Made by a program: the position numbers and the translations under genes. The notes beneath the pieces are model-generated. The model saw nothing but the letters and a program-made list of their open reading frames with translations. It was not told the origin of the DNA and ran no database searches. Shown one piece after another: positions 2,154 to 54,297 of a stretch of 64,000 bases of DNA. Position 1 is the stretch's first letter; each line of letters begins with the position of its first letter. The stretch comes from Anthoceros angustus (Eukaryota; Plantae; Anthocerotophyta). The stretch is taken from NCBI GenBank assembly GCA_010909165.1, contig MU008151.1:930001-994000 (forward strand). Direction: 5' to 3'.

Positions 2154-5100
2154 ATGGCGGAAGAGCATGAGGCGGAGGATTGGCGCGCACTGCCGGTTCA
2201 GCTGCAGCAGCTGCTGCTAGATCTGGGCCGGAATGCCGTGTCCGAACTACCCGATCTGCATAATGATGAAGAGTATGGCGGCTACTTCACTGATCGAATC
2301 CGTGGTGATGAGGGAAGGCACTGGCGAGTGCGCAAGCGGGTGTTGACAGCCATTGCCAACTGCCGTGTTGACTCCGTACTCATTCACCCCAGTTGGGCCA
2401 TCGGCTTGGATCGGGAGGATGAAGTGTCGGTTCTGTTGGGGGGCCTGGCGTCCAACCTTTGCCTGTACCTTCTGGCTGTGAAGGTTTTGGAAGGCAGGCG
2501 GCTTGCGAGGCTCTGGGCCAGCTTGTTGCTTCCAGTCGCCGCTTACGAACACTTTTAGCAGAGAGTGTTGGGCTTGATGCCGCCGGACTGGGTGCCCTGG
2601 CCAAAGGCTTCAACAAGGATTCTGTCCTGGAGAAGTTGTACTTAGAAGGGAACAAGGTGGGAGGTGCTGAAGGGGCACAGCACCTGGCCCGCATTCTGGC
2701 CACGGCTCCCCGTTTGAAGGAACTGTCACTGCAAAGCATCGGCTTGGATGTGGCGGGAGCCCAGTGTATTGCAAATGCTCTTCCGCTCTGTGCCACGCTC
2801 CGGTATCTGGCGTTGGATGATGGCGTTGCATTGCGGGGTCCCATTCCCGGCGGCCTCGGGCCCATGGGCACTGTGCTCAAACTTGCTTTCACCCGCGCGG
2901 ATGAGGATGAGAATGCCTCCATCTCTGGCGTCACACAGCTTTATTTGGATATCTCGAAGGATGGGGAGGCAGGCCTGGCAGACGCCCTGGCCGGAATGCT
3001 GCGCACCAACGATCGTATCGAGGAACTTCACACCACTCCATATGCTCTCATCCACGGCCTGGACGGGTTACGCTACAACTCCACCATATCTGAACTTCGT
3101 CTCCGGGACTCCAGTACGCCATCAGCTGCGACGGATGTGTGGATGCGCCTTGTCCAGTTGCTCCCGGAATGCAAAGCACTGCGTGTCCTGGACTTGGGAT
3201 CGCTCCGTGGCCACGCCTCGTTCAAGAAAGAGTTGCTGAGATCCTTGGAGGGCAACGCATCTCTGAAAAAGCTCGACATTTCTGGCTGGGACGCCCTGGA
3301 TCATGACATGTTTAGAGACTTGATGAACTGTATTCAAGTCAACAAGACGTTACGGGAGATCAACATCCAGTGGACAAAATGGGAAGCGGAAGGAAAGGAC
3401 GCAATCATCAATGCAGCCTTGGCAGGCAATGCCACTCAAGAGGCTTACTGGCCTTTGCTCGTGGGCAGGCAATCATCAATGCAGCCTTGGCAGGCAAGGG
3501 CCTGAGGCTGGGCGCCTCTTCCTGTGCGGTGCCCCTTTGGCAGGGAAGACCACTCTCCGCACCACCATGGTTCGCGCATGGAGACGACAGACAGCCGCAT
3601 CACTCAAGTCCTGGCTCGGCCAAGTTCCAGCTCAACTGAAGGGAAAAATATTTCGTGCTTGGCGACGGATGGCTTCCGTCACCGGTAGCAGAACGGAAGG
3701 CATAGAAATCGAGGTGTTGCGCAACGACCATGATATGCAAGTTACCATGTGGGATCTGGCTGGACAAGCTCACTACCGAGCTCTGCAAGACTACCTTTTT
3801 CCGACCTTCAACCAAGCATGTATCTTCCTGTTTGCGTTCAGCCCATTTGATGATCGGAAACCTCCCCAACTGCATCTCTAATGTCCTGCAGGACAGGTTC
3901 AGAAGGAGCTTGGCGTACTGGCTTAGGTTCATCAACTCCAATTGTCGCAACGTGGGCTCTACTTTGCCTCAAATATTTGTGGTGGCAACTCATGTGGATA
4001 AGATGAAGCGTTCTGATGCTGAAGCATTACCGAATCTCCTTCAACCCGTTCTGACAGAGTTGGCCACCGAGTTTGAACAGGTTGTTCACGTGAAACAAAA
4101 CACTCTTCTCCATGGACGCTCGATCTGCCAAGAGTGTGAAGCCCTTGCTGACGCACTCATGGAATCGTTTCGAGCTCTATTTGCAACTAAACTGTTTGGG
4201 TACCCGAGGTATGCAACCGATTGAGTGCTGATTTGACTGCCTGGGTATCCCAACATCCAGCTCAACCGATGGTGAGGAAACAGCAACTTCAAACTTTGTT
4301 CCAAAACGAGCTACAGAGTCTCCACAAAGGTGGGGTTCAAGATGAGGGGAACGATTGGGAGCCATTCTTGCCTATTTGCATGATGTGGGTAGTATCATCT
4401 GTTTTCAAGATACAGATGTTGTGGTGATAAATCCACACTGGATGAGTCACAATTTTTAGGGCGACTCATTCACCTTCTAACCAGAGCTAGAGGTTTGTCG
4501 CATTCCTCAGATGGATTTGTTGCTCAAAGTCTGCTTCATTCCACCTTGGATGAGATTCTCAGAGGCACACAAGCGGAGGGGATTGAAAGGCAACATCTGG
4601 TATCGTTGATGACCACTCTCAACTTATGCTATGAAGAGGATGGGACTCGACGTGTCGGATTCTTTGTTCCCTTCACCATGGCCGCCGGTAATGGTGACGC
4701 TGTTCCTGGGAGACGACAGTTGAACTGGGAAACTGCTGATACAGCAAGCAATTACATCTACCTCGGAAGGAGGTTACAGTGCCTTGACAAGACGAAGACG
4801 TTTCTTGGTCCAGGCTTTTTCCTAGATTCCAAGTACGATAACTACCAACATGTCTTTGTTTTGATGGTGTGTGTCTTCAACCTGTTTACTGACATTGTGG
4901 AGGTTTGCGTATTGCAGGTCTGCCTTCGAAAGGATTTGTTAACCGGATTCCATGGCATGCAACCTCATCAATATCGTATTGAACGCAACCTCATCAAGTT
5001 TTGTGTGATGGTATGGATGTGTTTTTTGGAAAGCAGTGGGGATATCGGAGAGGACACCGGAGACATCGGTGACCATATTGATATTCTGGTGAGGTCATCC

Positions 5101-6446
5101 AAGAGCAAAGATGAAACTATCGAGTTTCTCAAGGAACATGTGGTTGCAAAGTTGAAATCTTTTGTGCTTCCCTGAAGGCAGTCCGGGAGTCGAGCTTGTG
5201 GAAGGAATTATCAGGACCGAGTGTGTCGAAAACCTCACACTCTGTATCTACCGGCATAATCAGTCAGTGCTAACGCAGGATTTGCTCAAGTGTGTTTTGC
5301 AGACCAACAAGACTGTACAGGGAGATTTTCTCCTCAATGGATCTGGCCGACTTCGGTGGTGGCCACCATGTCCTGAAGCCTCTTTGAGAGTGCCTTTGAG
5401 CGAGCTGATGAGCTCTTAAGTACTGGTGAAGTCTTGGATGTCTTGCAAAGGCGACGAACAGGTCTCCGTCAAACCATATCCAACATAGATGCAGCTGTAG
5501 AGGAAGTCCTGCCTACAGAGGAAGGGGTGCTCGCACAACAAGACGCACCACTTCAAACGTCTCGGTTTGCCTACGTCCGACGTACTATATCCCTCCCTGG
5601 AACAACTCACTCGGAGATGGGGAGCAACTGTTGCAAACCATCAATCATGGGATGAGAGATTTGAAGCACGACGTGAAAATGGTGGATACATGGTTGAAAA
5701 TGGTGGAGACAGAGGTGAAAGCAGTGGGAGTCAAAGTGGATAGAGTTGGCGAGACTTTGCAACGTGAGATAAGCGATATGAAGACCTGGCAGGAAGATAC
5801 TCTACAACTCTTGCTTTCGAAGATGGATGAGATTATGAATTTCTCTGCAGAATTAGAAAGCAGTCAGATACCCAGACGTCCCTACATCACCACTGCAGAC
5901 GTGGGTCTGGCACAGAGATTGATTGCAGGGGTGCGTGTGGGCAAAGCGGCTAAGCTGCACTTCATGTGCGAAAACATCTTTGGGAATCACATCGTGAGGG
6001 CCAAACTGGATTTGACTTGACATTGGAGGATGCGAAGTGGAGGTGGATCAGGCCCTTAGCAATCAACGGTGCAAAGCTATTGCTCTTCCTGGCCAAGGCT
6101 GGCCTACACGTGGCTGCCGGCATTGGGGTGCGGTTCCCGACCCTGCTACCAGCTTGGATGGAGCGGTTCTGTGGCTGCGGCCTTGGGGAATCAGCCCTGT
6201 CCCATTTAAATCTGGACCTAACAGGACCAGCTGCGAGCCAGAACACTCCCGTGCAAGAGGCATGGATTGCTCTGAAGAATCTGTTGCATGTTGCTGAGGG
6301 ATCAAATGGCTGACAAATTCCAACTGCACAAGGTGCAATATCGGAAACGGCAGGATGGAGGACGAGGAGTGGCATGGGTTTGCGAACGGTGTATGCGGAG
6401 GGAATTACAAGACAAGTCTATCAGCCGCTCTGACGGGAGCAACTAG
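2154..6446 (+). CDS. TRN1-like: TORNADO1-like Roco protein (RI-type LRRs + Roc GTPase + COR), copy A; frameshifted in this consensus
   Basis: LRRs LEKLYLEGNKVG / LKELSLQSIGLD / LRVLDLGS / LKKLDISG. Roc motifs RLFLCGAPLAGKTT (P-loop), RTEGIEI, WDLAGQ, VATHVD. TRN1 hallmarks YWLRFINSN, YLGRRLQC, PGF(FPRFQ)V, GIIRTECV, LHFMCE, VAWVC; TAG at 6444-6446. Confidence 0.9.
4833..4917 (+). other. GT-AG intron in TRN1-like copy A
   Basis: CAA|GTACGA ... TACTGAC (branch point) ... TTGCAG|GTC. Splicing plus one restored T in the T run gives GFFPRFQ-VCLRK, matching the TRN1 FPRLQV motif. Confidence 0.8.
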
Positions 6447-6899
6447 AACGTCGTGTGTTGCAGCCTAACTTTGGCATTTGCAGGATGACTCTAGGAGCCA
6501 TCTGCATCATGTGATTGGATAATGGTAGGTAGACAGGCATTAGACTGTAGAGCCTAATCCTGCTGTATCTTACATCACTCTTTGCGAAATCCCACCTTTG
6601 TCGAATTCGTCCCTTTTGGTTGTTCAAGCCTCTGACTCTTCCAGAACTGTGGAGGGCCCTGGTTGGTGAAGGAGGGATCCTCCAGAGTGAGCATGCATCA
6701 GTGGCCAGGAATGACATCGTGCCCTGCACCTTGGAGTAATGACTAACACAAATTTGATCTGTGCATCTGTAGATTTTAGGGTACCAACGTCTTGGGAAGA
6801 ACAGCCAACCCGAGCTGGGACAAGCTGCCAAGACTTGGAAATGGCGAAACTTTCTGGTGCAGGTCCTTACTCCTTCAGGTAGTCGGTCTTACAGGCAGC

Positions 6900-7880
6900 A
6901 ATTGTTCACTACTCATGGTAAGACTTGCCTTGCCAAGGTTTGCAAGTTACTGATGCCATCGTGTGTCCGGAACGCACTTGGTGAAAATACAGGTGTCACA
7001 TGTACTGCCAGGATAGCAGGATATGCCCAGCAGGGGCATGGGCTCACGAACCCTTTGTCTCTATGGTGCGATAAAGGTTAGGCATGGATGTTCGCGCCTC
7101 CTGCAAAGGAGGACACCATAAATCTGGAGAAGGGGACGCAACTTCATGGGCAGACTAGAGAGCAAGCAACGTGTTTGTGGCCAGCACTGGTAAAGGAGAT
7201 GGTATGCTAGAGACATATTATGTAGCACTGTTTGCAGCAAACCTATGAGCTCGTCACACGGCGTGTTCTCGATTGCGTTTCTCAGCCAGTTGTGGGATAT
7301 GGAGCTATTGCAGTTATAGATAGTTCCGGTACCGGTGACATGTTTCGTGCTTCAGGCCTCGTAGATCGTTTGAATTGATAATTTGTCAAATGTGCAGAAA
7401 CGACATACTTGCAAGTTCACAGGTTTTGAAATTGGGGTGCTAGCAAGCTGGAGGTTATACTCATAGTGGACCTCCTGCTCCTGCAATTGGAATTTTGCAG
7501 CTGGACTCTGGAGGCCTTCTGTCCCAGGCTTTAGAAAATCCTGCTGTCAGGAGAGATCATGGTTCTCCACAATCTCTGGCAGTTCACTCAAGTTTGCTTT
7601 AGACATGTCCAAAGGGTAACCAATACACATGGAGGCACGGACTTGTGAAAGCAGTGCGTCCAAGGTGAGAAACCGATTGCAAATCACCTCTTCAATGTCC
7701 ACTGGCTCACTCGGCTAGCAAGAGACATTGCCTGAAGAGACATCCGTCATCTGGATGCACTGATTGCAGGCTACACCCGCCATGAAGGAGACAGTAAAGT
7801 GGACTTTGAGTTGGTCCAGAGAATGAAACAGGATGGCTTGCAACCAGACGGTATCGCATTCCTTAGTGTACTGACTGAGG
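6900..7880 (+). pseudogene. Degenerate PLS-class PPR gene fragments
   Basis: IAGYAQQGHG (~7010-7045) and ALIAGYTRHEGDSKVDFELVQRMKQDGLQPDGIAFLSVLT (~7757-7876). Confidence 0.75.
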
Positions 7881-8246
7881 CGGATGCCAGGATGGCGGCA
7901 GGAGTTAGGATGGCGGCAGGTGCACGGCCGGATTTGTGTTCAAGGAAGGACGATTTCTCTGCCTAAGTCTGTTTCCTTCAGGAGTCCTGCGGGTGCCCCA
8001 GGGAAACTGTCGTGACCTGGCGGGACCCTGTCTACTCCAGTTTACAGGGTCCAGCCCCTGAAACTGATCCCTGATGTATCCACTTCTGGCTGGGTAGGAT
8101 AGATTTTTGGTTTGTGAATGTTCTAGTGATGTCGTGAGCTTCCTCTGGCCTGCAGAATTAGGATCAGCAGCTGTACGTGTCATGAGATGGCAGGGTTCGA
8201 GCTGCTGCACGGTACTGTACGAAGAAAGTGATCCCGAAAACATTTC

Positions 8247-8347
8247 TGACAAACACCTTTGGCTTGTTCGCAGATACGTAACTGCATTCACTGACGGAGG
8301 CATCACTGAATACAGTAATCTGCAAACAAGCCAAAGGTGGTTTATCA
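8247..8347. ncRNA. ~100-nt foldback (pre-miRNA-like or mini-MITE), copy 1
   Basis: ACCTTTGGCTTGTT/AACAAGCCAAAGGT, GCAGAT/ATCTGC and ACTG..TTCA/TGAA..CAGT pair around a short loop. Confidence 0.45.
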
Positions 8348-8489
8348 TTAATGCTTGTCGAGGTGACCTTGTCACAAGTGGGAAGCCAATGGCTGAGACG
8401 TTGAGGGAGGCCAAGTCGTCAGCAAGAGGGCGGGGGAGGTTCGACCACTGCGTTCTGTCAGCGATTGTCTCGAGGTTCTCGAACAGAAG

Positions 8490-8598
8490 GATGTCAGGAA
8501 GGTATGGTTGTACCCAATTCCGTGACATTTGTGTGCCTCTTGCAGGCATGTGAAAATGTGGCAGCCTTGTGTGTAGGAAGACAGCGACACGCGCAAAA
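8490..8598 (+). pseudogene. PPR (L-type motif) fragment
   Basis: QEGMVVPNSVTFVCLLQACENVAALCVGRQRHAQ; duplicated at ~55870-55972. Confidence 0.8.
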
Positions 8599-8712
8599 CC
8601 GTTCATCGTCTTCAAGACGGGGTAGACTGGCCAAATCATTCCGGGCCAGGCAGTCCAGCAGCCGCCGCCGCCGCCGAGCCGGCAGCGCGCGCAGTCCTTC
8701 GCCTCGTCTGCT
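8598..8712 (-). pseudogene. Inverted N-terminal fragment of a divergent TRN1-like paralog
   Basis: RALPARRRRLLDCLARNDLASLPRLEDDERF aligns with copy A N-terminus DWRALPVQLQQLLLDLGRNAVSELPDLHNDEEY. Confidence 0.75.
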
Positions 8713-11214
8713 ACACTGTGGTCTCTTTGTCGAACGCGTGGAAAATGTCCGCGCCCAGAACGGGAAAAGACTGGCTTCGCACCGGACTTCCTCCATCCAG
8801 TCTCTGTTCAGCTCCTGGAGTCCCTGCAGGCAAAGGGATGGACCAAGTCAGGAAAAGGACAGTCGTCACCTCGACTCAAGGCAGCAAATCAGGTGCTAGG
8901 TGATGCCGTGTCCTCAACCTAATGAAGTACATACTTTACCCTAAGAAGCTTGGTTTCCACTTCGGAGAAGCTGCGACTAAGGATCATCGTTCGCTTCGCA
9001 TCTACGCAGTGGTAGACGTCATCATCCTCAACCCGCCTGTTGCAGCCAGGTGAGGAGCAAGCCGATGCGGTGCAGTTGCTCACAAGACGTGCACACCAAG
9101 GTAGCATATGCTAATCCGAATCGGAACCTTGACAACCTGGCTGCAACCACCTGCAACACCCTAATCCACACTGGCACATGCCTCACCATCTCATGCAGAA
9201 TCCACCATTCCTGCAGCTTGCAAGCAGGTAACAATGCAGGAGCAGGGCACGATGTCGTTACTAGCCGTTCATGCATGCTGATGAGACTGGAAGATCCTTC
9301 CCAGCTCTGCCCTAGCTGGGAATCATACCTCTTCGTCATTCAGTGACTTGTGAGCTGTGAGTGCAGAGTCTCGGAGTTCACACGCCCTTCGGGTCCAGAG
9401 TTTTGTGCAACGAAGGCTCGGTGTCATCTGAGTCTGCCGCCTCACACCCAACTCCACTCTGCTTGTCAGGCAAGTCAAAATCCGAAAGTGGTGCTTGCTC
9501 CTGGGGTCCCTAACTCAGACTCTCGAAGCTTTACATCCATTGTGCTAAGTGCGGCATCCTACAAAGCTCGAAGCTGAGACCAGGTTGAGGACTGTAGTTT
9601 GCCCTCTTTACTCAAGGGACTGTAGGAATACCAGACTCTGAAACAACAGGGCCCAAACCAACCGGGAACCCAAACTGCACCAGCTTAGAGGATTGTGAAG
9701 ACTTGTGAATGTCCCATCGCCGGTTGAAATCGGGAACTGCTTCGTCCGCAATGGCCCTTGCTAGGACGGTGGAGCTTGCCAAGATCGCTGTATTGGTGAT
9801 CATTCTGGAGTCAAAGGGACACTTCAAGATAATAGAGGAGATGCTGTAGCTCCGGGGCAGGAACCAAAGCAGGCGATTTTAACTGACTCTTGCAATGAAG
9901 GGGTAAGCTGCAGAGAGGCAGGCTGGGAGTCAATCCGCCCAGAGGTGGAGAGCCTGGAGCATAGTACACGGAATGCAGGGCATGCAACTACAGGTGCTTT
10001 AAGTACCAAGAATTTGCTGCCTGGGCTACTGAACTTGGAGGATCAAAGTCCTCCATTAGGAGATGCGGTGGAGGGCCTTGCAGCTGACCAAGGTGACAGT
10101 GGTTCAATTTTGGGGTGGTAGAGTCATTGCCTGCTGGTGTATCGAGGTTGCTAAGAGGCATTTCAACAGAAACTTCTGCTGTGAACGTTGTTGAGAAACA
10201 GGTTCGATTCTGCACCTTCTTTCTCAAGATAGTATAACCAAGCCTCATCTTGCAGATGTTTTCTTCATTGCAAATGCTCAGTGTGTGTAGTTGCCTACTG
10301 TTTGAAGAGGTGCCCAGGTAGACGCATTGTACACCCCTTTCTGGATGAAAAGGCCATGCATGCATCTCTTGTTGCCTGGTTAGGTTAAAACTATCTAAAG
10401 ACGAGATTAAGCCACTGGGAAAGATGCAGAAATATAGAGGGTCAAATTCTTCCATAGCTATGTCGTCACCTAGTTCATGAAACTGGTAGATTAAAATGGG
10501 AATTGTGGCCAGAAGAGCGCCTGGATAAGAAAGTGTTAACCTGTGCTAACTTTAATATATGCTCCTGGTATGCACAAATAGGTCCCATGACATGCAGCAG
10601 GTGAAGAGTGGCTTGTAGAAAGTCTCACTATCCAAGAAGTAGGAACATGTGAGAGATTAGGAGAGGGTGTATACAATCTACAGCCAAGCCTTGGCAGACC
10701 AGACCACACCACATCAAGGAAGCAACGAACATCCTTTACCTGTAGCGCAAACCATGTGTCCAATCCTCTAAATTCCGAATGACAAATGAGCTCTTCAAGA
10801 AGCTAGGCAAACTGTGCCCATGTTTTGAAAATCCTGTATGCCACGCTTTGCAAGGCTTGTCCTGTTTTACCAGGGTTAGACTGTTCTTTCGCTCAGCTTT
10901 GCTGGATGGATGGACTGTGGTGCGTGAAATTTATTCGTGATGTAAAGCCTGTGAAGATTGGGAGCGTGAAAGGACATCAACTCTGAAAAGGTTAGCATTG
11001 GTAGCTTTGCACAGCGCGTTGAGATTGGCAGACGGAGAGGACAAATTAACTCTTGAGAGGTTGGGATCGATAGGTCTGCACAGGGCGTTTCTTTGACAAT
11101 TCTATCCAGGTTAACTTTTAACGAGTCCGTACTGGGGCGCATGTATATACATGTAGGACCGACTTTCGTCACAAAGCCGTCCGTTTGAGTCGAGACGTGG
11201 GATCGGATTAGGTC

Positions 11215-11806: not shown

Positions 11807-13060
11807 GAGTTTCTCAAGGAACATGTGATTGCAAAGTTGAAATCTTTTGTGCTTCCTGACGGCAGTCCGAAGTCGAGTTTGTGGAAGGAATTATCAGGAC
11901 CGAGTGTGTCGAAAACCTCACACTCTGTATCCACCGGCATAACCAGTCAGTGCTAAAGCAGGATTTGCTCGAGCGTGTTCTTCCAGACCAACAAGACTGT
12001 ACAGGGAGATTTTCTCCTCATGGGATCTGGCCGACTTCAAATGGTGGTGGCCAGAATGTCCTGAAGCCTTTCTGAAGAATGCCTTTGAGCGAGCTAAAGA
12101 GCTCTTAAGTGCTGGTGAACTCTTGGATGTCTTGCAAAGGCGACGAACAGGTCTCCTTCAAACCATATCCAACATAGATGCAGCTGTAGAGGAAGTCCTG
12201 CCTACAGAGAAAGGGGTGCTCGCACAACAAGACGCACCAGTTCAAACGTCTCGGTTTGTCAGCATCCGATGTGGGTACTATATCCCTCCCTGGAACAACT
12301 CACTCGGAGATGGGGAGCAACTGTTGCAAAACATCAATCAAGGGATAAGAGATTTGAAGCAAGAGGTGAAAGCAGTGGGAGTCAAAGTGGATAGAATTGG
12401 CGAGACTTTGCAACTTATCCAACATGAGATGAGCGCTATCAAGGCTGGGCAGGAAGCTACTCAACAATTCTTGCTTTCGAAGATGGATGAGATTATGAAT
12501 TTCTCTGCATAATTAGAAAGCAGTCAGATACCCAGACGTCCCTACATCACCACTGCAGACGTGGATCTAGCACAGAGGTTGATTGCAGGGGTGCGTGCGG
12601 GCAAAGCGGCTAAGCTCCATTTCATGTGCGAAAACATCTTTGGGAGTCACATCGTGCAGGGCCAAACTGGATTCGACTTGACATTGGAGGATGCGAAGTG
12701 GAAGTGGATCAGGCCCATAGCAATCAGAGGTATCAATCAAGGTTTTGGTTTTCCTAGTGAAAGCTGGCCTACATGTGGCTGCCGGCATTGGGAATGCGGT
12801 TCCCGACCCTTCCACCAGCTTGGATGGACCGGTTTCTGTGGCTGCGGCCTTTGGGGAATCAGCCCTGTCCCATTTAAATCTGGACCTGACAGGACCAGCT
12901 GCGAGCCAGAACACTCCCGTGCAAGAGGCATGGATTGCTCTGAAGAATCTTTGCAGCCGTTGCTGAGGGATCAAATGGCCGACAGATTCCAACTGCATAA
13001 GGTGCAATTTCTGACGGGAGCAACTAAAACGTCGTGTGTTGCAGCCTAACTTCGGCATTT
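11807..13060 (+). pseudogene. TRN1-like C-terminal (COR and tail) duplicate fragment
   Basis: High nucleotide identity to 5121-6480 and 52921-54250. Starts abruptly at EFLKEHV; in-frame TAA at 12510-12512 where the paralogs have GAA. Confidence 0.9.
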
Positions 13061-13089
13061 GCAGGATTTGGAGAGGACACAGGGGACGT

Positions 13090-13930
13090 CGATGATCGTG
13101 TTGATATTTTGATGAGGTTTTGGTATGGGTAATCGAGTAAGACCAAACAATCGAGTTTCTCCTGAGAGCGTTGCAGAACTGAGAGCGTTTTGTGCTTCTC
13201 CTGACGGTGGTGCAGGAGTTGAACTTATGGAAGGGATCATCAGGATTGAGTGTGTAGAGAACCTCACACCCAGTATCAATCAGTTCTAACAGTTTGATGA
13301 AGTGCCTTCTTGAGAATCAGAAAAGCTTTCCAGGGCAGATTTCCTCCGGCTTGGATTTTCCTGATTATCAACGGTCCTGGCCAGCGAGGCCTGAAGCCCA
13401 TCTACCCAGTGCCTTTGAGGAAGCCAGGGACCTCTTCAGGATGTTTTGCAAGAGTGGCGGACACGTCTATCCCTCCGTGTAACAAGTGACCCTTTTATTG
13501 AAGAAAACGTTACTCGCAGCAATCGCCTCAGTGCAGAAGCTACTGTATGGTAACGAAAGCGTGGAAGCAGGCAATCGGAGCGGTTGCGCAATGACTGTAA
13601 GCATGGAAGAAGACAGACCTGGAGGAGCGGTAGAGGGCGACGTGAAGCTCTTCTCCAGACCTTCAAAGTTTAAAACTGATGTTGTGGTGAACGATCTAAG
13701 GATCTCACAGCAGAAGCAGTTGTGGAGACGAACCTTTCAGGGATGTCGAGAAAGGCACAAACTTTATCATAGCTTTGATGGAAGCCATCATTGAGGGCTC
13801 TCAAACGGAAGATGTGCTGAGCATTGTAGCAAGCGTGATTGGCAAGGTCACGGACATGGAGGTCGTGCACAAAACCGGAGCAGGATACGAGAAGAAATTC
13901 CTGTGTCCCGAGTTGCGCAGCACTCTAACT
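13090..13930 (+). pseudogene. Older, divergent TRN1-like COR fragment
   Basis: DDRVDILMRF...AFCASPDGGAGVELMEGIIRIECVENLTP...YQRSWPARPEAHLPSAFEEARDL parallels DHIDILVRS...SPGVELVEGIIRTECVENLT. The 3' extent is uncertain; a short piece recurs at ~56630-56690. Confidence 0.7.
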
Positions 13931-15643: not shown

Positions 15644-15762
15644 AATGATGACAAACACCTTTGGCTTGTTTGCCAGAGATGTACATAACTGTTTCCACTG
15701 ATGGGCCTATCACTGGACACAGTTTTGCGGCAGACAAGCCAAAGGTGTTTTGTTTTATCATT
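15644..15762. ncRNA. Foldback family, copy 3
   Basis: AAACACCTTTGGCTTGTTTGCC ... AACTGT.TCCA.TGAT / ATCA.TGGA.ACAGTT ... GGCAGACAAGCCAAAGGTGTTT. Confidence 0.45.
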
Positions 15763-15996
15763 AATGCTTGTTGAGGCACCACAACTGCCAAGGGCTAAGA
15801 CGTCGGAGACGATGTCTTAGAGAAGCAATCTCGTCAGCAAGAGAGCTGGGAAGGTTCGACCCTGCTTTCTGTGAGTGACTGTCTCGTCGTTTTCTCAACC
15901 AGTCATGGGAGAAGTATGTTTCAGAGATGCCGAGAAAGGCACCAAATTTATCCTCGCTTTGGTGGAAGCCATCGTTGAGGCCTCTCTAGTTGGCAG

Positions 15997-16130
15997 ATTG
16001 TAGGACAGCGGCTCCAAGCTGATGTGTTTGTAGCTGGCAGTTTGATTAGCACGTATGGGAAGTCAAGCAGCACGGTTGATGCACAGCTGGTGTTTGACAC
16101 TGTCATCGGAAAGCACTGATTGCAGGCTGC
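15997..16130 (+). pseudogene. PPR (S-type motif) fragment
   Basis: IVGQRLQADVFVAGSLISTYGKSSSTVDAQLVFDTV. Confidence 0.7.
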
Positions 16131-39943: not shown

Positions 39944-39946
39944 TTT

Positions 39947-39962
39947 TGGCGCTGCTGGGGGA
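39947..39962 (+). other. Primer binding site
   Basis: TGGCGCTGCTGGGGGA lies immediately after the LTR, similar to the tRNA-Asp-type PBS TGGCGCCGTTGCCGGGGA of Athila-like elements. Confidence 0.7.
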
Positions 39963-42900
39963 ATGAAATCGGTCTGGTGCAGTGCGCCCTTAGGAAGAGA
40001 AGGTAAGTGAATGCGTCGACCGGTCAAGAGTGAACTGCCGAGGATCGGACGTGGTCACCTCGCGTGCTCTCCGAGCCGTGAGAGGAGAGACGCCAAACCC
40101 AACGAGAGCACCGCCGATCGAGGAGGGAGAACGTGGTCGAATTGTCGACCAAGACGAGTACGGGTAAGGGACGCCAACGGAAGAAGGTAGGACCCACGCC
40201 TAACCCATCGATGGCGCAGCCATGGCCCCTACCTCGACCAAACAAGCGCATCTATTCGGAGGGAAGAAGGAGCGGATGCGAGACCTTTGTGGAGGACTTC
40301 ATGTCCAAAGCCAACTTCAGCGGAGAGGGAGTCGACGTACCATCCAAATTTTCCAAGGGGTTCTCCGAGGACCGCTCAATGGTATCGGAGAAAGTACCGA
40401 CCAGGAGAATGCCCCACCCGCCTCGTTTGAAGCTTTGAAAATGCCTTCTTAGAACGGTTTCGAGGATCGACCGGGAGGGTATGTATTATCAAAGTTGGAA
40501 AATCAGGCGAGGAAGAAGGAGAAGCGGGCTCAGACATCGAGCGGTTCTATGCCCCGAGGATCGGCATCCAACCCATACCACCACGGGTACGGTGGTTGGC
40601 GGTCTAGCCAAACCCATGGCGAGCACGTCCTGCTGGCCGAGAAGGGCGTGGGCAAGGCGGTCGAGCGCCGAAAACTACGAGGAATCGCTACATCGAGGAT
40701 AAAGAAATCCGCTCAAGGAGGCAAGAAGAAGAAGAAGAAACGGGACTCCGAGGAGGAAGAGTCTTCGAGGAGGAGGAAGACCAATCGGAGGTGTCTTCTG
40801 AGGAGGAGCGTCCAAGAAGAGACGGAGGTCTCTAGCGAGGAAGAGTATCCCGCAAGAAGAAGAGCAAGAAAGCCCCAAAAAGAAGGTGGTAAGAAGGAGG
40901 TGGTGACACCAAGACCGTCCGAGAAGCTCCACCGGACCCGACTCCCTCAAAGGAGGTGGCAGTGCAGGAGGACTGGAAAAAGTGATAAAGAGAGTAGAGG
41001 ACAGCGATAAACTGTTAAGGACCGAGAGCGCGGAAAACACCGACCACGGAACGATCTCGTGTGCCGTGCCAAGCCACGGCCATTCGAATCCAACCGCCTC
41101 AAGGCCTCAAGTGGACTACGAATACGAGGAGGAGGCCGAGGAGCAATGGGAAGAGGCCTATCGCATGTGAAGCCCCTCCGGGCCGCGATATCCCAAAACC
41201 ATGTATCCGCCAACCGGAGGTCCGTCAATACAACGAGCCCCACTGCATGGGAGCCCTTCGTATCCTCCGACCGTGGTCGCTGGAACCGCGGGAATCTGGC
41301 CATTACTCCAACGCGTGTCCGCACTCAACGAGGTGGTAATGGGGACTTCGAGCCGGTGGCGATCGCAAGGCCGGGCATATGACATGCAAGACGCTATGTC
41401 CCAACCTCACAAGGACGGTAGCGATATGCCACACCAAGCGGAGAACCCGACCACCAACGCCACCTCCTAAGACTGACTGCAAGTCAAGATGCTCGATTGG
41501 CGGAGTGGGAAGAGATTCCCAGTGCGAGATGGAAAGAACAAGAAGGTACGGTGGGGGTGTCGAAAGGAAGGGAGTTGGAGTGGAAATCTTGAGGTGTCTA
41601 CTCAGAGTCAAGGAAGGAGCGACGAGAAAGGCGCCAGAAGAAGAACAAGATCGAGGAAGGCCACGGACGCCGAGGAAGGCAATCAAACCAAATACCAGCA
41701 GGATCCGACCGATGAAGGAGGGCTGGACGGCAGCTCGCCGAGGGATTCAAGGAAGTTCTCCCAGTGATGTGGAGAAGGAACGGTGCCTCCGCGACGGCGA
41801 CGTTAGCTTCCACGGACGTAGTCCGGAGGTGACCGAGATGTTGCAGGAGGAAATGCGCAAGCATCCGGAGAATACCGTAACACGTGACCCGGGAGAGGAT
41901 GAGGACGCAGCAGGATCCTCGATTGGGGTAGAAGCCTCGCCTTTAATGTGGACGATGATGAATCACAGCACCTTGTGTCCTTTCGACCTGCCGAGGATAA
42001 CCCAAATACCGGCAAGAGGTCCGTCGGGCCGTTAGGAAACCAGCCTCGGAGCACCAAAGCCGTGAAGGGTAGCACAGTGAAGTGAGGTGGTGTCCCATAC
42101 GACCTGGGGCGCCAGGTACAAGTGGAGATTGGATGTATCATCAAGGATGTACTGCTGGACACGGGTCCGAGTCAACCTCATCATCAAGCCACGACGAAAA
42201 TTGGGCTTCACATCCTTCAACCTCAACGAAGACTCGAGAATGGCGTATATGTCAAGAAGAGATCCGCGGGAGTTAACCGAGTCTTGGCCACCATAGCCGG
42301 TGCACCCTACAAACCGGATTTTGTTGTGATCAAACCGCCGACCATTAGGGTATGAGGTGTTCTTTGGGCGGCCATGGTGGGTTGGCCTGCACGCTACACT
42401 TTGGAAGGAAGGAGATTCACTTCAAGCCGTGGTGGGACCCTAAGGTGCGAGAAGGAGGTTGCTATCACCGGAGCAAGGACACCTATTGTGGGGAAACTGT
42501 GAGCACAAGGGTATACGGAGGACTCCAATCGAAACAAGATAGTTCCGAGGAGGCGACTTTCGCCAAGATCCGGTCCGAGGAGGAGATGGACTACCGGATG
42601 CCTTTGAAGTGGTTGATTGTTTTGAGTAAACGCCACAGCTGGAGGAAGGAAGTGAAGAGGAGGTCGGACCAAAGACAAGGGGAGACAACAAGAGTCGGAC
42701 CAAGGAAAAGCTGACATCAAGGAGTAACACGATTCACCTCCGACGAGCTCAGAATGGGGATGCGAGAGGACGATCCCGAGAGGAGGACGAGGGGTTTGAC
42801 GCGAGGCCGCGAGCAGGAGGCAGTGAACCCGGACGACGTGGAAGAAGTGGAGGTCCGCCTGCAAATTCTCAAGTTTAAGAAAGGCATGCCTCGGACCAAG

Positions 42901-45636
42901 GAAGCGGACATCGAAGGAGTAACACGATTCACCTCCGGAGCTCTTGAGAGAATGGGGATGCGAGAGGGCGATCCCGAGGAGGAGGAGGACGAGGGGTTTG
43001 GGCAGGCCGCGGGAGCAGGAGGCAGTGACGGCGTGGAAGAAGTGGAGGTCCGGCCAGGCAAATTCACGAAGTTTAAGAAAGGCATGCCTCGGACTGAAGG
43101 AAGGACTAAAGCATGGGGAGTTTTATGTTCGCCTTCAAGGTCACGGACATGAAGGGCATTCAAGAAGTGGGAGAGCATAAGATCGATTTGAAGCCGGAGG
43201 CGGTGCCGGTCAATCCGACAATACAAGCTCAACCCCAAGTATTCGATCAAGGTGAAGGAGGTCCTTGATAAGTACCGGAGGCAGACATCATTTTCCCCAT
43301 CACACAACGAGTGGGTCGCTACGGTGGTGGTTCCCAAGAAACAACCAGACAAATTCGGGTATGCCAAGATTGAGGAAGCTCAACGCCGAACGAGAAGGAC
43401 CACTTCCGATGCCATTCAGACGACATTTTGGACAAGGTGGTGGACGGACTACTTACTCCTTCCCGGATGGCTACTCCGGATATAACCAATTGCACCTAAG
43501 GGAGTTTGACCGACAAGACGACCTTCACTACGAGTGGGGTACGCTTGCCTACAAGAGAAGTGCCTTTGGGATGACCGAGCGCCTGTGGTCGCTCATGCGA
43601 TGGTGACCAACGTCTTGTGACTTCGAGGGACTTCATGGAGATATTCTGGATGATTTTGTGTGCATGGGGAGGACAAACACCTTGGGCATCTAAGAAGGTG
43701 CTTGAGCGCCGGAGACTCAATTGAGCCTACACCCGAGAAATGCTACTTTGGAATGACGGAGGGAATCTTGCTTTGGGACATCGGGTGTCGGCGGGGAATC
43801 GAGGTGGACCAGACAAGGTCCGGTCATCCGCCTCTCACCACGACGAACCTAAAGGAGCCGAGAGGTTTCACAGGAATGGTGGGATACTACCGGTTTATTA
43901 AGGACTTTGAAGAGGCGGCTAAGTTGATGTAACCATCGGAAGGAGGAGGTTTGGACCGGTCACGTGAGCGAGAGGAGGCCTTCGGGAACACACCTTGGTA
44001 AGCACCGGTTCTAAGAGGACCGGATCGAGCAGAAATTTCATGTGTATGTAGATGTGTCCGCTTTGCTATCGGAGGTGCCGAAGGAACGAAGGGATTATCC
44101 CGATACTACTACGACACACCCACGCTGAACGAAAATACACAACTACAGAGCCAAGTATGGTATATGTCAAGAAATTCGACACTACCTACCCAAAGGAGTT
44201 TGTGTTCTATGTAGACCACTTTGTCAAGCATCCGTGAATAAGACGGACTCCGGACGGATAGCAAGGTGGATATTGAGTTCACGTCAAGTGGAAACAAGAC
44301 AAGGGAGGCAAGACCAAAATGCGATTTCTCACACGATTGAAAACAGGTGTGAGAGATCGTGAAGATGCGCTCCTGGATGAGACATTGGTTGCCGCAGAAA
44401 GAAGTACAACCGGAGGAGCCCAGACCGAACCCCAAGCTACGAGAACACTTAGCGTAAGCGGAGAAGGGAGGTCCGCCGTCCGACCCACGAAGAAATAGAG
44501 CGTACTGGGAATGGAGCTCAAAATCGACTCGTGGATGAGGGAGGCATTGCACTATGCTCGACCCTTCGTAATGTACAACGGTGTGTGTTCAAATTAGGGC
44601 CTGACGGAGTAGAACGAAGGTACTTGCAAACCGCAGAGGAGCTCGCCGGGAATGCACGAAGGATTGGGGTGGACACACGAAGACAGTCACCACCAAAAGA
44701 TTTGAAGCGGATACCGTGGCCAACAATGTATGGGGACACCCACCGCTTAGAAGAAGTGTGATGCTTGTCAGGATCGGAAGCCAACCCCGACACAAAGGCC
44801 GCTAGTACCGATATTGGCACCGCACCTTCAAAAGTGGGGTATTGACTTTGTTGGACCTATACGACAAGACACACACAAAGGAGATACATCCCGTGGCAAC
44901 GGATCATCGCACTGTGGGTAGAGGCGGGCGACATAAGAACGGACTCGCAAATAGTGGCCAAATTCTGACGAGAACATCATAACCCGCAGATGTCCGCCGT
45001 AGCTTGGTGATAGGGGAACCCATTTCCTTAATGATGTGGTGGCCGCCATGACGGAGTATTGCATCAATCATCGCAAGACGGCACCCTACAATCCTAAGGC
45101 CAATGGGTGACAGAGAAGACAAATGGGCTCATCCGCAGGATCAATAAACTCAAGAACTACGCCCATGATCGATACTGCCATCCGTGACCGTATGCCCGGC
45201 AGAGAAGGTGACCACACAACGGACCCCTTACTTGACCTACTGACACTCTCCCGTAATGCCGAGTTTGAAGTGCCCACTTTTCGAGTAATGATGGAAGGAG
45301 ACCGACAAGAGGAAAGCCACGAGCGACTCTTGGGGTTTGTGCAAAGACATGAGGACAGGGAAGAAGCTCAGAAGATGCAACAGGTGCAAAACCAAAAGAT
45401 TTGGCACGATCGCCGATCGCGAATCGTGGAGTATGTAAAGGAAGGGACCGCCCTCCTTTATGATAGTCGACATGCATTTTCCGTGCAAACTTCACCGAGA
45501 TGGGTCAAGTGGTGCAAGTATATGACAACGGGTCCGTCCAGCCCACGGCGCCTAGATGGAGAGTCGCCCACTTGAAACGGGTGGGGTGAAGAAGTATGCT
45601 TAGTGTTGGCGAGACGCCAATGATGAGAAGGGAGTA

Positions 45637-47050
45637 TGTGGGCTATGCACTCGGGAGTTAGAAATAAGTAGGCTTTAGGATTGAAGGATAAATAAGGCGG
45701 AAAAGGAGGAATAAATTGGGGTAGCCCGGACGAGGCTCCGGAGTATACCCGACTGGAGGAACAACGGACCCCGACCACTATGGCAAGCCCGACTACGCCG
45801 AGTAACGGGATAAGTCCTAACCCACCCAGTCAAAATAGGATAAGTACGCCGAAAGTAACAACAATGGAGGACTTCGAGGAGAGCCACGGAGGAGTCCGTG
45901 AGGAGAAACCCGGTGGATGAGTCGACTTTGCCCGACCCTGAGGGGAGGCCGGACCAAGTCCGACTGTCCGGACCAAGTCCGGACTAATAAGTCCGGACCA
46001 AGTCCGGACATGTAATAAGTCCGGACCTCAAGTCCGGACCCCAATAACCGACCGAGGTCCGGACCCCGCAGACAGTCACAGCCGGCCGACCTGTGAATAA
46101 GCCGGACTCAAGTTCGTGAGTCGAGACAGACCTCGAGGACCGTTGCGGCAAGAAGGAGGAGCCCCACTTCACGCTAGGGGAGCCGATAGCTGGTGGCCCC
46201 ACGCGGGACCTGTGAGGCCAGGAGGATGACGCCGTGGTAACGGCGCTCACCGCCGCCAGAGCTCCAACCCGGCTGTGATTCCGGGAGAGGAGGGGTCCCG
46301 CCTCACGGATCATCCGATTGCACCACAACCGCTGACGGGGATTGGACCACCCATTCCGAGGGCCTGTGACCTTCCCACCGGCAAGGAGATAGGGGATAGG
46401 CCGGTAGGCGGCCGATTAGGTATACCGAAATGGGTTATCACGTAATAGGGGTGTAATAAAGACGCCACCTTGGGCGCAGATAAGAGGGCCGAGGTCGCCT
46501 AGTAAAGCATCTTTCTCTTGGTGTTGATGCCGCACCTTTGTGAGTCTTCTTGCTAACGTGAGTCCCGAGTCACCGAAAGGTGCACGATACCCGGGAGATT
46601 GATCAAGGTCCCGTGACGGACTTAACGCGTTGTGGTGTGTGCGTGGAAGGGTGACCGGTGATCCGTGTCCCGAGCCGCGTCCGACACCGAACGGACCGAA
46701 CGCGGAGCCGGAGGAACTCCGGAGGGTGTAGAGCCCGGACGAGAGGCCCGCGGAACGACGGAGGAGGTCCGGATCACAGAACGGCCTTTTCTAAGATCAA
46801 GAGTGTAGCGTGAGAGGAGAGAAAAGGATCGGATGCGTGAAGGATGTGAACGATACGGACGCGAACGGGTCTAAACGCTTACACCAGTTCAGTGCACGCC
46901 AGAGTAGTTAGAGTATGTGAGACCGAACGAGCGCTAAGGACGGTAAGAATCACCAAACGCGTAAACGGGCCTATCATTCCCTTGGGAACGGACTTCTTCC
47001 TACAACGACACGGATTGTGGCGCGCCACGGCCAAAGAAAGTCCCGCCACA
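45637..47050 (+). repeat. 3' LTR, preceded by polypurine tract GAGAAGGGAG (45625-45634)
   Basis: Starts TG, ends CA, collinear with the 5' LTR. Confidence 0.88.
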
Positions 47051-48690: not shown

Positions 48691-48961
48691 ATGGCCAAGA
48701 AGAGGAGGCGGAGGATTGGCGCGTAGCGTTCACCGCAGCACGCTAGTTCTGGGGCCGAATGCGTCCAACTACCCGAGCTGCATATTGAAGAAGAGTATGG
48801 CGGCTACTTCACCGATCGAATGTGGTGATGAGGAAGGCATCATGAGCAAGAAGGTGTTGACCATTACCAGCAGCCTCGAGTTCATACACATTGAGCAGTG
48901 GGCCACGGCTTGGATCGGAGGATGAAGTGTCGGTTACGTTCGCTGGCGTCCAACCCTTCCC
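48691..48961 (+). pseudogene. Truncated 5' fragment of a TRN1-like copy with its own upstream region (48020-48690)
   Basis: GAGGCGGAGGATTGGCGCG, GAGTATGGCGGCTACTTCAC and CTGGCGTCCAACCCTTCC match the starts of copies A and B; ends where the duplicated upstream block restarts (~48975). Confidence 0.8.
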
Positions 48962-50001
48962 CTCGAAGCACCGAGTCTATGATGACACTAGACAACGCTG
49001 AAAATCGCCACCCATCTCCGATATCCATCTAAGCTGGAGATTTTGCTTCACATTCTTGAAGGTGAGGAAGGAAGGTGTGTTTCCATCCTTCCTATCCGGT
49101 GATTTGGTTGTGGAGAGCGTCTGAAAGCGTGGCTTTTGCAAAACAAACCGTGAGAGCAACAGTGACCAACTTGCTCAATAGATTGAACCCCACTGTAGAA
49201 ACCATTAACCCGGTCGACACCATCGTCCTCGACACTTCAGCCACGTGTGTGCCATTGTGCGGTGAAGGATTTTCTCACCGTCGACACATCCATGGCCTTG
49301 GAAAGGTGCGGGGATTACTCGATTCTGCAACATTTGCAGCCTATAATATAAACTCATCACCATTCTGCAGGTCCATGAACCATTGATGCCAAGGACGTCC
49401 ATATGCCCTCTCAGGAGAATGTTCATATGCAACAACAATAACAACAACTTTATGTATGTCCACTGAAATCTATTGGAAAGAGAAAAAGCGATTACTCAGA
49501 CTGCTATTCACTTGTGGAGAAACACCATGGGTTATATCCGCAATATCATTGCACTTGGAACCCTTCCCCACCGACTTTAGTGTGCGTGTTGTTCCCTTTC
49601 ACATTCACGCTGCCGATGAGCTTAGATTCATGAAAGATCATGTTATCGAAAATTAAGTAAAAGGGTTTCTAGGCTGGATCCAGTTTCCATGGACACCCAA
49701 CCCAACCCAGCCCAGCCCATCATTCATCACAGGGACCGTGCACGGGAGCCGTTCCGTTCCGTTCCGGTGTCCTGATCTCGACTGACCCGGACAAATTCCC
49801 ATTCCATTTACTTATTTTAGCATGTTTAAGTTTGGGCTGTTTCGCCGTTCATGTGGGAAGTTTCGCTGCGTGGGGCCTGGCTGCCAGGGCTGAAGGCCGC
49901 GGGGATGTGGTGTGGCCTGGAGGAGCACAGCACCTGCCTGGCCCTCATTCCATTCTAGCAGTCCGGGAAGCATAGCATAGCATAGCACAGCATAGCAGAG
50001 C

Positions 50002-53000
50002 ATGGCGGAAGAGCATGAGGCGGAGGATTGGCGCGCGCTGCCGGTTCAGCTGCAGCAGCTGCTGCTAGATCTGGGCCGGAATGCCGTGATCCGTCTACCC
50101 AACCTGGAGGAAGATGGAGACTATGGCGGCTACTTCACTGATCGAATCCGTGGTGATGAGGGAAGGCACTGGCGAGTGCGCACGCGGGTGTTGACAGCCA
50201 TTTCCAACTGCCGCAGTCTCCGGGACATAACCATTGAGTCCGAGTGGGCCATCGGCTTGGATCGGGAGGATGAAGTGTCGGTTCTGTTGGGGGGCCTGGC
50301 GTCCAACCCTTCCCTGAAATATCTGCGTCTGTCTGTGAAGGTTTTGGAAGGCAGGCGGCTTGCGAGGCTCTGGGCCAGCTTGTTGCATCCAGTCGCAGCT
50401 TACTTCAGCACCCAAAGTTGGGCTTGATGCCGCGGACTGGGTGCCCTGGCCAAAGGCTTCAACAAGGATTCTGTCCTGGAGTTGGTCTTACGAGGAACAA
50501 GGTGGGAGGTGCTGAAGGGCACAGCACCTGGCCCGCATTCTGGCCACGGCTCCCCGTCTCAAGAAACTGTCACTGAAAAGCATCGGCATGGATGTGGCGG
50601 GAGCCCAGTGTATTGCAAATGCTCTTCCGCTCTGTGCCACGCTCCGGTATCTGGCGTTGGCATTGCAGGGGTCCCATTCCGGCGGCCTGGGCCCATGGGC
50701 ACTGTGCTCAAACTTGCTTTCACCCGCGCGGATGAGGATGAGAATGCCTCCATCTCTGGCGTCACACAGCTGTTGGATATCTCGAAGGATGGGGAGGCAG
50801 GCCTGGCAGACGCCCTGGCCGGAATGCTGCGCACCAACGATCGTATCGAGCTTGTCACCACTCCATATGCTCTCATCCACGGCCTGGACGGGTTACGCCA
50901 CAACTCCACCATATCTGAACTTCGTCTCCGGGACTCAGTACGCCATCAGCTGCGACGGATGTGTGGATGCGCCTTGTCCAGTTGCTCCCGGAATGCAAAG
51001 CACTGCGTGTCCTGGACTTGGGATCGCTCAAGGGCCACGCCTCGTTCAAGAAAGAGTTGCTGAGATCCTTGGAGGGCAACGCATCTCTGAAAAGCTCGAC
51101 ATTTCTGGCTGGACGCCCTGGATCATGACATGTTTAGAGACTTGATGAACTGTATTCAAGTCAACAAGACGTTACGGAGATCAACATCCGGGGACAACAT
51201 GGGAAGCGGAAGGAAAGGACGCAATCATCAATGCAGCCTTGGCAGGCAATGCCACTCAAGAGGCTTACTGGCCTTTGCTCAGGCAAGGGCCTGTGATGCC
51301 CAAGGCTGGGCGCCTCTTCCTGTGCGGTGCCCCTTTGGCAGGGAAGACCACTCTCCGCACCACCATGATTCGCGCATGGAGACGACAGCCGCATCACCCG
51401 AGTTCCAGCTCAGCCAAGTTCTAGCTCGACTGAAGGGAAAAATATTTCGTGCTTGGCGACGGATGGCTTCCGTCACCGGTACCAGAACGGAAGGCATAGA
51501 AATCGAGGTGTTGCGCAACGACCATGATATGCAAGTTACCATGTGGGATCTGGCTGGACAAGCTCACTACCGAGCTCTGCAAGACTACCTTTTCCGACCT
51601 TCAACCAAGCATGTATCTTCCTGTTTGCGTTCAGCCCATTTGATGATCGGAAACCTCCCCAATGCATCCGTCTAATGTCCTGCAGGACAGGTTCAGAAGG
51701 AGCTTGGCGTACTGGCTTAGGTTCATCAACTCCAATTGTCGCAACGTGGGCTCTACTTTGCCTCAAATATTTGTGGTGGCAACTCATGTGGATAAGATGA
51801 AGCGTTCTGATGCTGAAGCATTACCCAATCTCCTTCAACCCGTTCTGACAGAGTTGGCCACCGAGTTTGAACAGGTTGTTCACGTGGAAACAAAACACTC
51901 TTCTCCATGGACGCTCGATCTGCCAAGAGTGTGAAGCCCTTGCTGGACGCACTCATGGAATCGTTTCGAGCTCTATTTGCAACTAAACTGTTTTGGGTAC
52001 CTGAGGTATGCAACCGATTGAGTGCTGATTTGACTGCCTGGGTATCCCAACATCCAGCTCAACCGATGGTGAGGAAACAGCAACTTCAAACTTTGTTCCA
52101 AAACGAGCTAAGAGTCTCCACGAAGGTGGGGTTCAAGATGAGGGGAACGATTGGGAGCCATTCTTGCCTATTTGCATGATGTGGGTAGTATCATCTGTTT
52201 TCAAGATACAGATGTTGTGGTGATAAATCCACACTGGATGAGTCACAATTTTTAGGGCGACTCATTCACCTTCTAACCAGCATGTCTCCGTCTACTAGAG
52301 GTTTGTCGCATTCCTCAGATGGATTTGTTGCTCAAAGTCTGCTTCATTCCACCTTGGATGAGATTCTCAGAGGCACACAAGCGGAGGGATTGAAAGGCAA
52401 CATCTGGTATCGTTGATGACCACTCTCAACTTATGCTATGAAGAGGATGGGACTCGACGTGTCGGATTCTTTGTTCCCTTCACCATGGCCGCCGGTAATG
52501 GTGACGCTTCCTGGGAGACGACAGTTGAACTGGGAAACTGCTGATACAGCAAGCAATTACATCTACCTCGGAAGGAGGTTACAGTGCCTTGACAAGACGA
52601 AGACGTTTCTTGGTCCAGGCTTTTTCCTAGATTCCAAGTACGATAACTACCAACATGTCTTTGTTTGATGGTGTGTGTCTTCAACCTGTTTACTGACATT
52701 GTGGAGGTTTGCGTATTGCAGGTCTGCCTTCGAAAGGATTTGTTCGGATTCCATGGCATGCAACCTGAGCAATATCGTATTGAACGCAACCTCATCAAGT
52801 TTTGGTGTGATGGTATGGATGTGTTTTGGAAAGCAGTGGGGATATCGGAGAGGACACCGGAGACATCGGTGACCATATCGATATTCTGGTGAGGTCATCC
52901 AAGAGCAAAGATGAAACTATCGAGTTTCTCAAGGAACATGTGATTGCAAAGTTGAAATCTTTTGTGCTTCCCTGAAGGCAGTCCGGGAGTCGAGCTTGTG

Positions 53001-54297
53001 GAAGGAATTATCAGGACCGAGTGTGTCGAAAACCTCACACTCTGTATCTACCGGCATAATCAGTCAGTGCTAACGCAGGATTTGCTGAAGCGTGTTTTGC
53101 AGACCAACAAGACTGTACAGGGAGATTTTCTCCTCAATGGATCTGGCCGACTTCAAATGGTGGTGGCCAGAATGTCCTGAAGCCTTTTTGAGAATGCCTT
53201 TGAGCGAGCTGAGCTCTTAAGTGCTGGTGAACTCTTGGATGTCTTGATGTCGACGAACAGGTCTCCTTCAAACCATATCCAACATAGATGCAGCTGTAGA
53301 GGAAGTCCTGCCTACAGAGAAAGGGTGCTCGCACAACAAGACGCACCAGTTCAAACGTCTCGGTCTGCCAGCGTCCGACGTACTATATCCCTCCCTGGAA
53401 CAACTCACTCGGAGATGGGGAGCAACTGTTGCAAACCATCAATCAAGGGATAAGAGATTTGAGCACAACGTGAAAATGGTGGAGACAGAGGTGAAAGCAG
53501 TGGGAGTCAAAGTGGATAGAATTGGCGAGACTTTGCAACTTATCCAACATGAGATGAGCGCTATCAGGGCTGAGCAGGAAGCTACTCAACAATTTTTGCT
53601 TTCTAAGATGGATGAGATTATGAATTTCTCTGCAGAATTAGAAAGCAGTCAGATACCCAGACGTCCCTACATCACCACTGCAGACGTGGGTGTAGTACAG
53701 AGATTGATTGCAGGGGTGCGTGTGGGCAAAGCGGCTAAGCTGCACTTCATGTGCGAAAACATCTTTGGGAATCACATCGTGGAGGGCCAAACTGGATTCG
53801 ACTTGACATTGGAGGATGCGAAGTGGAAGTGGATCAGGCCCTAGCAATCAGAGGTATCAAGGTTTTGGTTTTCCTAGTGAAAGCTGGCCTACATGTGGCT
53901 GCCGGCATTGGGAATGCGGTTCCCGACCCTTCACCAGCTTGGATGGAACGCTGTATCTCACTGCGGCCTCTCTGGACGCAGACCTGTCCAAGGTAGATCT
54001 CAACCTGACAGGTCCATCGGCGGACCAGGACATTTCCGTGAAGGAGGCATGGATTACCCTGAGGATCTGGTCAAGCCGTTGGTAAAGGATCACATCGGCG
54101 AGATATTCCAACTGCATAGGTGCAATTTCGGAAAAGGCCTGAGGGAGGACGAGGAGTGGCATGGGTGCCCAACGTGTATGCAGAGGGAATTGACAGACGT
54201 GTTTATGAGAAACTCTGATGGGAGCTACTCAAACGTCGTGTGTTGCAGCATCACCCGGATTTGGTACATGACTGGAGGAGCGATCTGCACCACGTGA
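50002..54297 (+). CDS. TRN1-like: TORNADO1-like Roco protein (LRR-Roc-COR), copy B; frameshifted in this consensus
   Basis: Collinear paralog of copy A with GAPLAGKTT, RTEGIEI, WDLAGQ, YWLRFINSN, VATHVD and LHFMCE; intron 52638-52721 at the same position. Confidence 0.9.

Follow-up and report, generated by a model that had tools for sequence, protein, structure and literature searches.

In brown algae, clustered and diversifying LRR-ROCO proteins, in which leucine-rich repeats (LRRs) are joined to a Roc GTPase and a COR domain, have been proposed as immune receptors (PMC3341825, PMC11378527), an idea that has gone untested since 2011. In flowering plants the Roco gene TORNADO1 (TRN1) is developmental (PMC4104024), and a 2014 review found ROCO genes, among the plants searched, in flowering plants only (PMC4104024). 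Here we describe a 64,000-nucleotide stretch of the hornwort Anthoceros angustus (GenBank assembly GCA_010909165.1, contig MU008151.1, positions 930,001 to 994,000; hereafter the window), for which a reading of the letters alone (the original prediction) had proposed a birth-and-death cluster of TRN1-like LRR-Roc-COR genes acting as non-NLR immune receptors. The window, whose GC content is near 50%, contains two such genes, copies A and B, together with several fragments (Table 1). Rocos, TRN1 and the brown-algal receptor proposal are known; the new element is an expanded Roco family with a variable LRR face in bryophytes. Our literature search, which covered few subscription papers, returned no paper on such a family, only the brown-algal and review papers.

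The window resembles the brown-algal system in its LRR-Roc-COR architecture, its clusters and fragments and its LRR diversification, and the immune role is proposed but unproven there as well. It differs in how the repeats vary: the algal genes carry one repeat per exon and undergo exon shuffling, whereas the window LRR domain has no intron and blocks of residues vary on its strands. With the highly variable plant NLRs it shares tandem clusters, a near-fixed nucleotide switch and allelic hypervariation of the concave LRR face, but the window genes have no NB-ARC and no TIR, RPW8 or kinase head, their LRRs are N-terminal, and their switch is a Roc GTPase. The reading that we prefer, to which we give about even credence, is that A and B are recent segmental duplicates within an expanded bryophyte branch of TRN1-like Rocos, that one or both, or else a near-identical copy, are intact and transcribed, and that the branch may form a diversifying family of cytosolic non-NLR sensors, with an immune role assigned by analogy.

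Two TRN1-like Roco genes in a hornwort

Frame-aware alignment to a profile of the family showed A (from 2154) and B (from 50002) to be complete genes of ~1400 codons each, both collinear with P0156, an intact single-ORF (open reading frame) relative of 1399 amino acids; self-BLAST aligned the two over ~5 kb at 90% (1853-6771 vs 49695-54555). The two long copies that had originally been reported are thus present at full length, although neither frame is open as assembled. In both, the order is ~12 RI-like LRRs, Roc, COR, a coiled coil and a Cys/His tail, and the LRR region of A is uninterrupted coding sequence. Pfam matched Roc on a piece of A with an E-value of 1.6e-5 (25.5 bits, below the curated cut-off of 27) and COR-A at only 0.089; the relatives P0156 and P0154 carry COR-A matches, and collinearity with them places the COR of A directly after Roc. 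No NB-ARC or NACHT domain was found in Pfam scans of the window gene pieces, where Roc matched instead. Judged by domain order, G motifs and collinearity with P0156, A and B are TORNADO1-like LRR-Roc-COR genes, and this part of the original prediction holds. The window Roc may bind and hydrolyze GTP and may drive a nucleotide-dependent dimer switch, as predicted for such a domain.

Flowering-plant TRN1 has the same architecture (RI-like LRRs, Roc, COR, coiled coil, Cys/His tail, ~1400 amino acids), and the window pieces are 24-45% identical to Nyssa TRN1. TRN1 is, however, conserved, acts in development and lacks a hypervariable LRR face, whereas the window gene is multicopy, has a variable face and falls in another clade. 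Our tree, computed from Roc to the gene end, is unrooted and sparsely sampled (two angiosperm rows, no other hornwort row and no brown-algal rows), and its rows for the window genes are pieces joined by X. In it, A, a Logan protein, Calypogeia and the Marchantia expansion form a group with 100/100 support, from which both angiosperm TRN1 and the Sphagnum expansion are separate. A grouping of A with flowering-plant TRN1 was rejected (approximately unbiased test, p-AU 2.5e-10), and we also rejected the window genes as TRN1 orthologues on the grounds of their separate clade and unconserved LRR face, so the comparison with canonical TRN1 that the original prediction had called for revealed no orthology. 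The closest relatives are expanded TRN1-like genes of Marchantia and Sphagnum (“COR domain-containing”), which are 30-44% identical from Roc to the end, share the position of the COR intron and vary alike on the LRR face, but which arose in separate lineage-specific expansions.

Folds were predicted for the relative P0156. Its tail (1208-1399), which includes a hydrophobic helix, was modeled with a pLDDT of 78 and resembles the tail of a cyanobacterial Roc-COR cluster (TM 0.60); this likeness is a lead on the origin of the family.

Variation on the exposed LRR face

Between A and B, substitutions are concentrated on the LRR strands: 31 fall within the 295 strand bases and 27 within the 973 bases that make up the rest of the LRR (p 4.6e-7), and the changed LRR codons comprise 33 non-synonymous and 4 synonymous cases. 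Roc-COR is ~99% identical by substitutions, and the last 380 bases are divergent again (70 substitutions). Contigs from two sequencing runs were compared with the window: X1, a DNA run, and X2, probably an RNA run (the label is a guess). Only one sample of this species contained the stretch. At 2556-2565, third and fourth strand variants appear among the DNA and RNA contigs. X1 includes A-type and B-type pieces, covered roughly half as deeply as the Roc part common to both, although depth is only a rough guide. In two related species, runs X8 and X17 yielded 1598 and 550 contigs at ≥85% to window 1850-6900, so the subfamily is multicopy there too.

The family extends well beyond hornworts. In a profile search we recovered numerous Sphagnum genes as well as at least 53 different Marchantia polymorpha gene IDs, of which 22 map to chromosome 8 and 10 to chromosome 4; the search was not exhaustive, and these counts are lower bounds. 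A HMMER search returned mostly generic RI-like LRR proteins but led to the Marchantia and Logan relatives. The LRR piece by itself, searched under a length limit, gave no homologue, and the searches yielded no hornwort protein that could serve as an intact reference from the same genus. The predicted clustered multicopy family in non-seed plants is therefore borne out.

We compared alleles and orthologues at exposed LRR strand positions (the face), assigned by motif pattern rather than by structure. For three Tak-1/Tak-2 pairs with the same gene ID, 40-46% of face positions differ; the figures are 12-14% for the rest of the LRR and 1%, 1% and 12% from Roc onward. One of these genes, 8g15075, lies in loci that are collinear over 12.5 kb between the two accessions, and its non-synonymous differences per site (pN) are 0.26 on the face, 0.063 in the rest of the LRR and 0.006 from Roc to the end. 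In seven Sphagnum pairs the same comparison gave 36-55% for the face vs 8-23%. Two controls ran in the reverse direction: TRN1 of Nyssa vs Ranunculus (face 19% vs 30%) and Mp1g27080 between two Marchantia species (face 1% vs 7%). Judged by these comparisons, the family evolves in an NLR-like manner, its scaffold, Roc-COR and tail near fixed while exposed LRR strand residues change fast, and the combination of hypervariable concave face, conserved switch and clusters appears as it does in NLRs. The diversification that the original prediction had inferred is thus seen in the hornwort window, in Marchantia and in Sphagnum but not in canonical TRN1, and the possibility that it had named as fatal, a family under purifying selection, did not materialize.

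Three side observations concern the relatives. Mp1g27080 (P0151/P0080), with an LRR face highly conserved between two Marchantia species, is a candidate conserved helper or developmental copy. The two alleles of 8g15075 (L003 from Tak-1, L004 from Tak-2) fall into different 90% clusters owing to LRR-face variation, as do those of 8g15140 and 8g15893. Finally, P0019 (Riccia, 2397 amino acids) and P0068 (Marchantia, 3382 amino acids) each contain two LRR-Roc-COR units and are either tandem fusions or merged gene models.

The Roco switch is a change in the nucleotide and dimer state of Roc-COR. In the model that we favor, the LRR face of a cytosolic sensor would bind a microbial molecule or effector, binding would shift the Roc-COR state, and the change would be relayed by the coiled coil either to the conserved Cys/His tail or to a defence-triggering partner, with Roc-COR taking the part that NB-ARC plays in NLRs. 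More broadly, and with slightly less than even confidence, we suggest that bryophytes have variable intracellular immune receptors built on Roc-COR in place of NB-ARC, with output through a tail that has no solved fold or through partner Rocos; hornworts, liverworts and peat mosses would each have expanded the class independently, and in flowering plants it would have shrunk to the developmental gene TRN1. The bryophyte expansion, in Marchantia among others, may explain the origin of TRN1. Because Marchantia, a genetic model for which two accurate genomes exist, carries dozens of these genes and they vary between alleles much as NLRs do, the receptor idea becomes directly testable in a land plant.

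Frame breaks and competing explanations

The frame breaks in A and B (Table 1) are nearly all missing bases, mostly single bases in homopolymer runs, and frame-aware alignment showed no clear nonsense substitution in either gene. Between the two copies there are 20 isolated short indels and 23 isolated substitutions, and 17 of the 20 indels lie in runs vs 46% expected (p 4e-4); COR-A has 2 substitutions in 640 bases and 8 frame-breaking indels. The terminal repeats of a nearby long terminal repeat (LTR) element (38547-47050) differ from each other by 100 gaps and 54 substitutions, and the whole region therefore appears poorly polished. The A. angustus genome was assembled from nanopore reads with wtdbg and Pilon (PMC7027989). 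Methylation context was considered as a cause of the indels and was not significant (CHG p 0.06, CG/CHG p 0.24). By their type and placement, most breaks bear the signature of long-read consensus error, which makes the apparent damage weak evidence of gene death; it also means that the assembly cannot show which copies are live or dead. In this assembly, calling a multicopy gene a “dead copy” may be a mistake, and the window is a poor cloning substrate until it is re-sequenced.

The run contigs bear on the same question. X2 has zero depth upstream of ~2019 and covers the coding region, and one of its contigs matches the 3′ end particular to A (6378-6796), its 419 bases showing no substitution and five inserted letters. 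By net-length arithmetic, 6 of 6 coding X2 contigs restore the frame, which would happen by chance ~1 in 700 times given the estimated shifts needed. A lesion at 5159 is common to A, B and a 6%-diverged fragment, yet is absent from an X2 contig that is 99% like A. We discarded the “0 of N” rows of the read gap table as evidence, as short-contig runs of other species also gave 0 where an insertion was required. Taken together, A, B or a near-identical copy is probably intact, and some real lesions in A or B are possible.

Several points weigh against the reading set out above. The immune function may be no more than an analogy; the window genes showed no effector domain of the NLR type, and the P0156 tail matched no solved structure (coiled-coil matches only, or Z <3, with a best Z of 2.7). 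Positive selection on the face is putative; the polishing of B is poor in the LRR, where part of its divergence from A may be error, and in the 8g15075 pair the synonymous differences per site (pS) are also raised on the face (0.17 on 40 sites), which indicates block exchange besides point selection. Contigs of X1 and X2 cannot be phased to A or B. A single base is missing immediately 5′ of the intron in both genes; although X1 repairs two A-specific defects, its contig 4758-4914 matches the window exactly across this missing base (at ~4822), and 4 of 6 X1 contigs, three others among them, stay one base short of frame. These last points are what an alternative explanation would lead one to expect, namely that A and B are real young pseudogenes with a few true lesions beneath much assembly noise, that near-identical live copies elsewhere are the source of the RNA, and that the two serve at most as gene-conversion donors. 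If X1 is short-read, some lesions may be real; if long-read, they may be systematic error. On copy-specific pieces its depth is ~130-170, in keeping with the short reads of PMC7027989 if the run comes from that study, but each of the four shortfalls is exactly minus one, the pattern expected of systematic long-read error. With the absence of clear nonsense substitutions, the excess of deletions in runs, the substitution-free match of a probable RNA contig to A’s 3′ end and the 5159 lesion missing from RNA also standing against it, we consider the pseudogene explanation unlikely.

Similarly improbable in our view is that the family diversifies for recognition of something other than pathogens: a cyanobacterial or fungal symbiont, self and non-self, a mating partner or selfish elements. 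A variable face reveals an arms race or specificity, not the partner’s identity; TRN1 itself is developmental (PMC4104024), and the tail fold is shared with the cyanobacterial Roc-COR proteins. Yet a single pattern holds in hornwort, Marchantia and Sphagnum despite their differing symbionts and mating systems. Immune receptors, moreover, are the most typical case of clustering combined with allelic LRR variation. A further explanation is that segmental duplication in a region rich in transposons amplified a TRN1-like gene neutrally and that its LRR varies through relaxed constraint. This would suit a duplicated block beside a 30.7-kb mobile insert in a genus where tandem duplication is common (PMC7027989), but relaxation would neither spare Roc-COR nor target the face, non-synonymous changes dominate, and the face of canonical TRN1 is, if anything, better conserved than the rest; this explanation is largely refuted, and we regard it as very improbable. 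That the cluster is an assembly artefact, one gene written repeatedly, is scarcely credible: the poor polishing of the region and a truncated copy at 48691 that resembles a raw read would fit, but A and B differ by in-frame sense blocks, their LRR strands and 3′ ends are distinct, and pieces of both types occur in the read contigs, so that they do not collapse to one gene, an outcome that would have undone the original prediction.

Layout of the locus

As judged by self-BLAST, A and B lie in a segmental duplication that is split by a mobile-element insert. Flanking sequence was duplicated along with the genes, 7895-9222 recurring at 55323-56628 and 15243-16959 at 56695-58048. All of the pieces listed originally exist, but they are not independent. 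The inverted scraps at 8598 and 55973, each of ~38 codons and 75% alike to the start of A, share one duplicated block (8353-9222 = 55730-56628, 90%) and therefore represent one event copied twice; the same duplication accounts for the pair at 13093 and 56630. C-terminal fragments of two ages are confirmed, the younger differing from A and from B alike by 77 substitutions over 1.2 kb. The copy at 48691 is probably a third paralogue, because its first LRR strand matches neither A nor B, although its truncation and the block order may be artefacts. Its upstream region starts at 16389-17287 and picks up again at 48017, beyond the insert. As proof of birth and death, the pseudogene debris is weakened by the poor polishing and by the partly common origin of the fragments, which are themselves real.

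Table 1. Features of the Roco locus in the window
Feature	Position	Strand	Remarks
Copy A	2154-6446	+	Full-length LRR-Roc-COR gene, ~1400 codons; at least 16 frame breaks as assembled
RI-like LRR domain of A	2154-3460	+	~12 repeats, no intron
Roc GTPase of A	3528-3999	+	G1 3528-3554, G3 3750-3767, G4 3988-3999, all intact
COR region of A	4100-5340	+	Collinear with P0156, P0154 and Marchantia proteins
Intron of A	4833-4917	+	GT-AG, 85 bases; same position as Marchantia Mp8g15075 intron
Coiled coil and C-terminal tail domain of A	5341-6446	+	Invariant Cys/His residues; from alignments and folds of relative P0156
Inverted N-terminal scrap	8598-8708	-	Diverged paralogue inside duplicated block 7895-9222
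Young C-terminal fragment	11807-13060	+	End of COR to gene end; equidistant from A and B, A-type 3′ end
Older C-terminal fragment	13062-13440	+	Another paralogue, ~72% alike
Mobile-element insert	17288-48016		30.7 kb; splits upstream region of 48691 copy; holds decayed LTR retroelement 38547-47050
5′ truncated copy	48691-48961	+	~90 codons, near raw-read quality; 45 gaps vs A
Copy B	50002-54297	+	Full-length LRR-Roc-COR gene; at least 28 frame breaks as assembled; intron 52638-52721
Inverted N-terminal scrap, second copy	55973-56086	-	Same segmental duplication
70-base copy of 13093 fragment	56631-56700	+	Same segmental duplication

Several minor features were recorded around these genes. Upstream of A, a five-base microsatellite (1758-1877) and a short repeat before the start codon (2121-2155) both recur, in shorter form, in B and in the 48691 copy. 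The two junctions of the insert have a short sequence in common. Within the insert are a CACTA-type start (17400) and a 185-base satellite (24801-25395) whose inverted relatives lie at 33734-34809; there are also several tandem doublings of 350-930 bases, which may be assembly stutter. Pfam gave no match in the 20 ORFs tried elsewhere in the window. By eye, we recognised the element at 38547-47050 as Ty3/gypsy-like, the start of a dynamin (DRP1-like) gene with a P-loop exon at 63840-63920, and short PPR-like coding scraps at 7600-7880 (+) and 60900-61150 (-).

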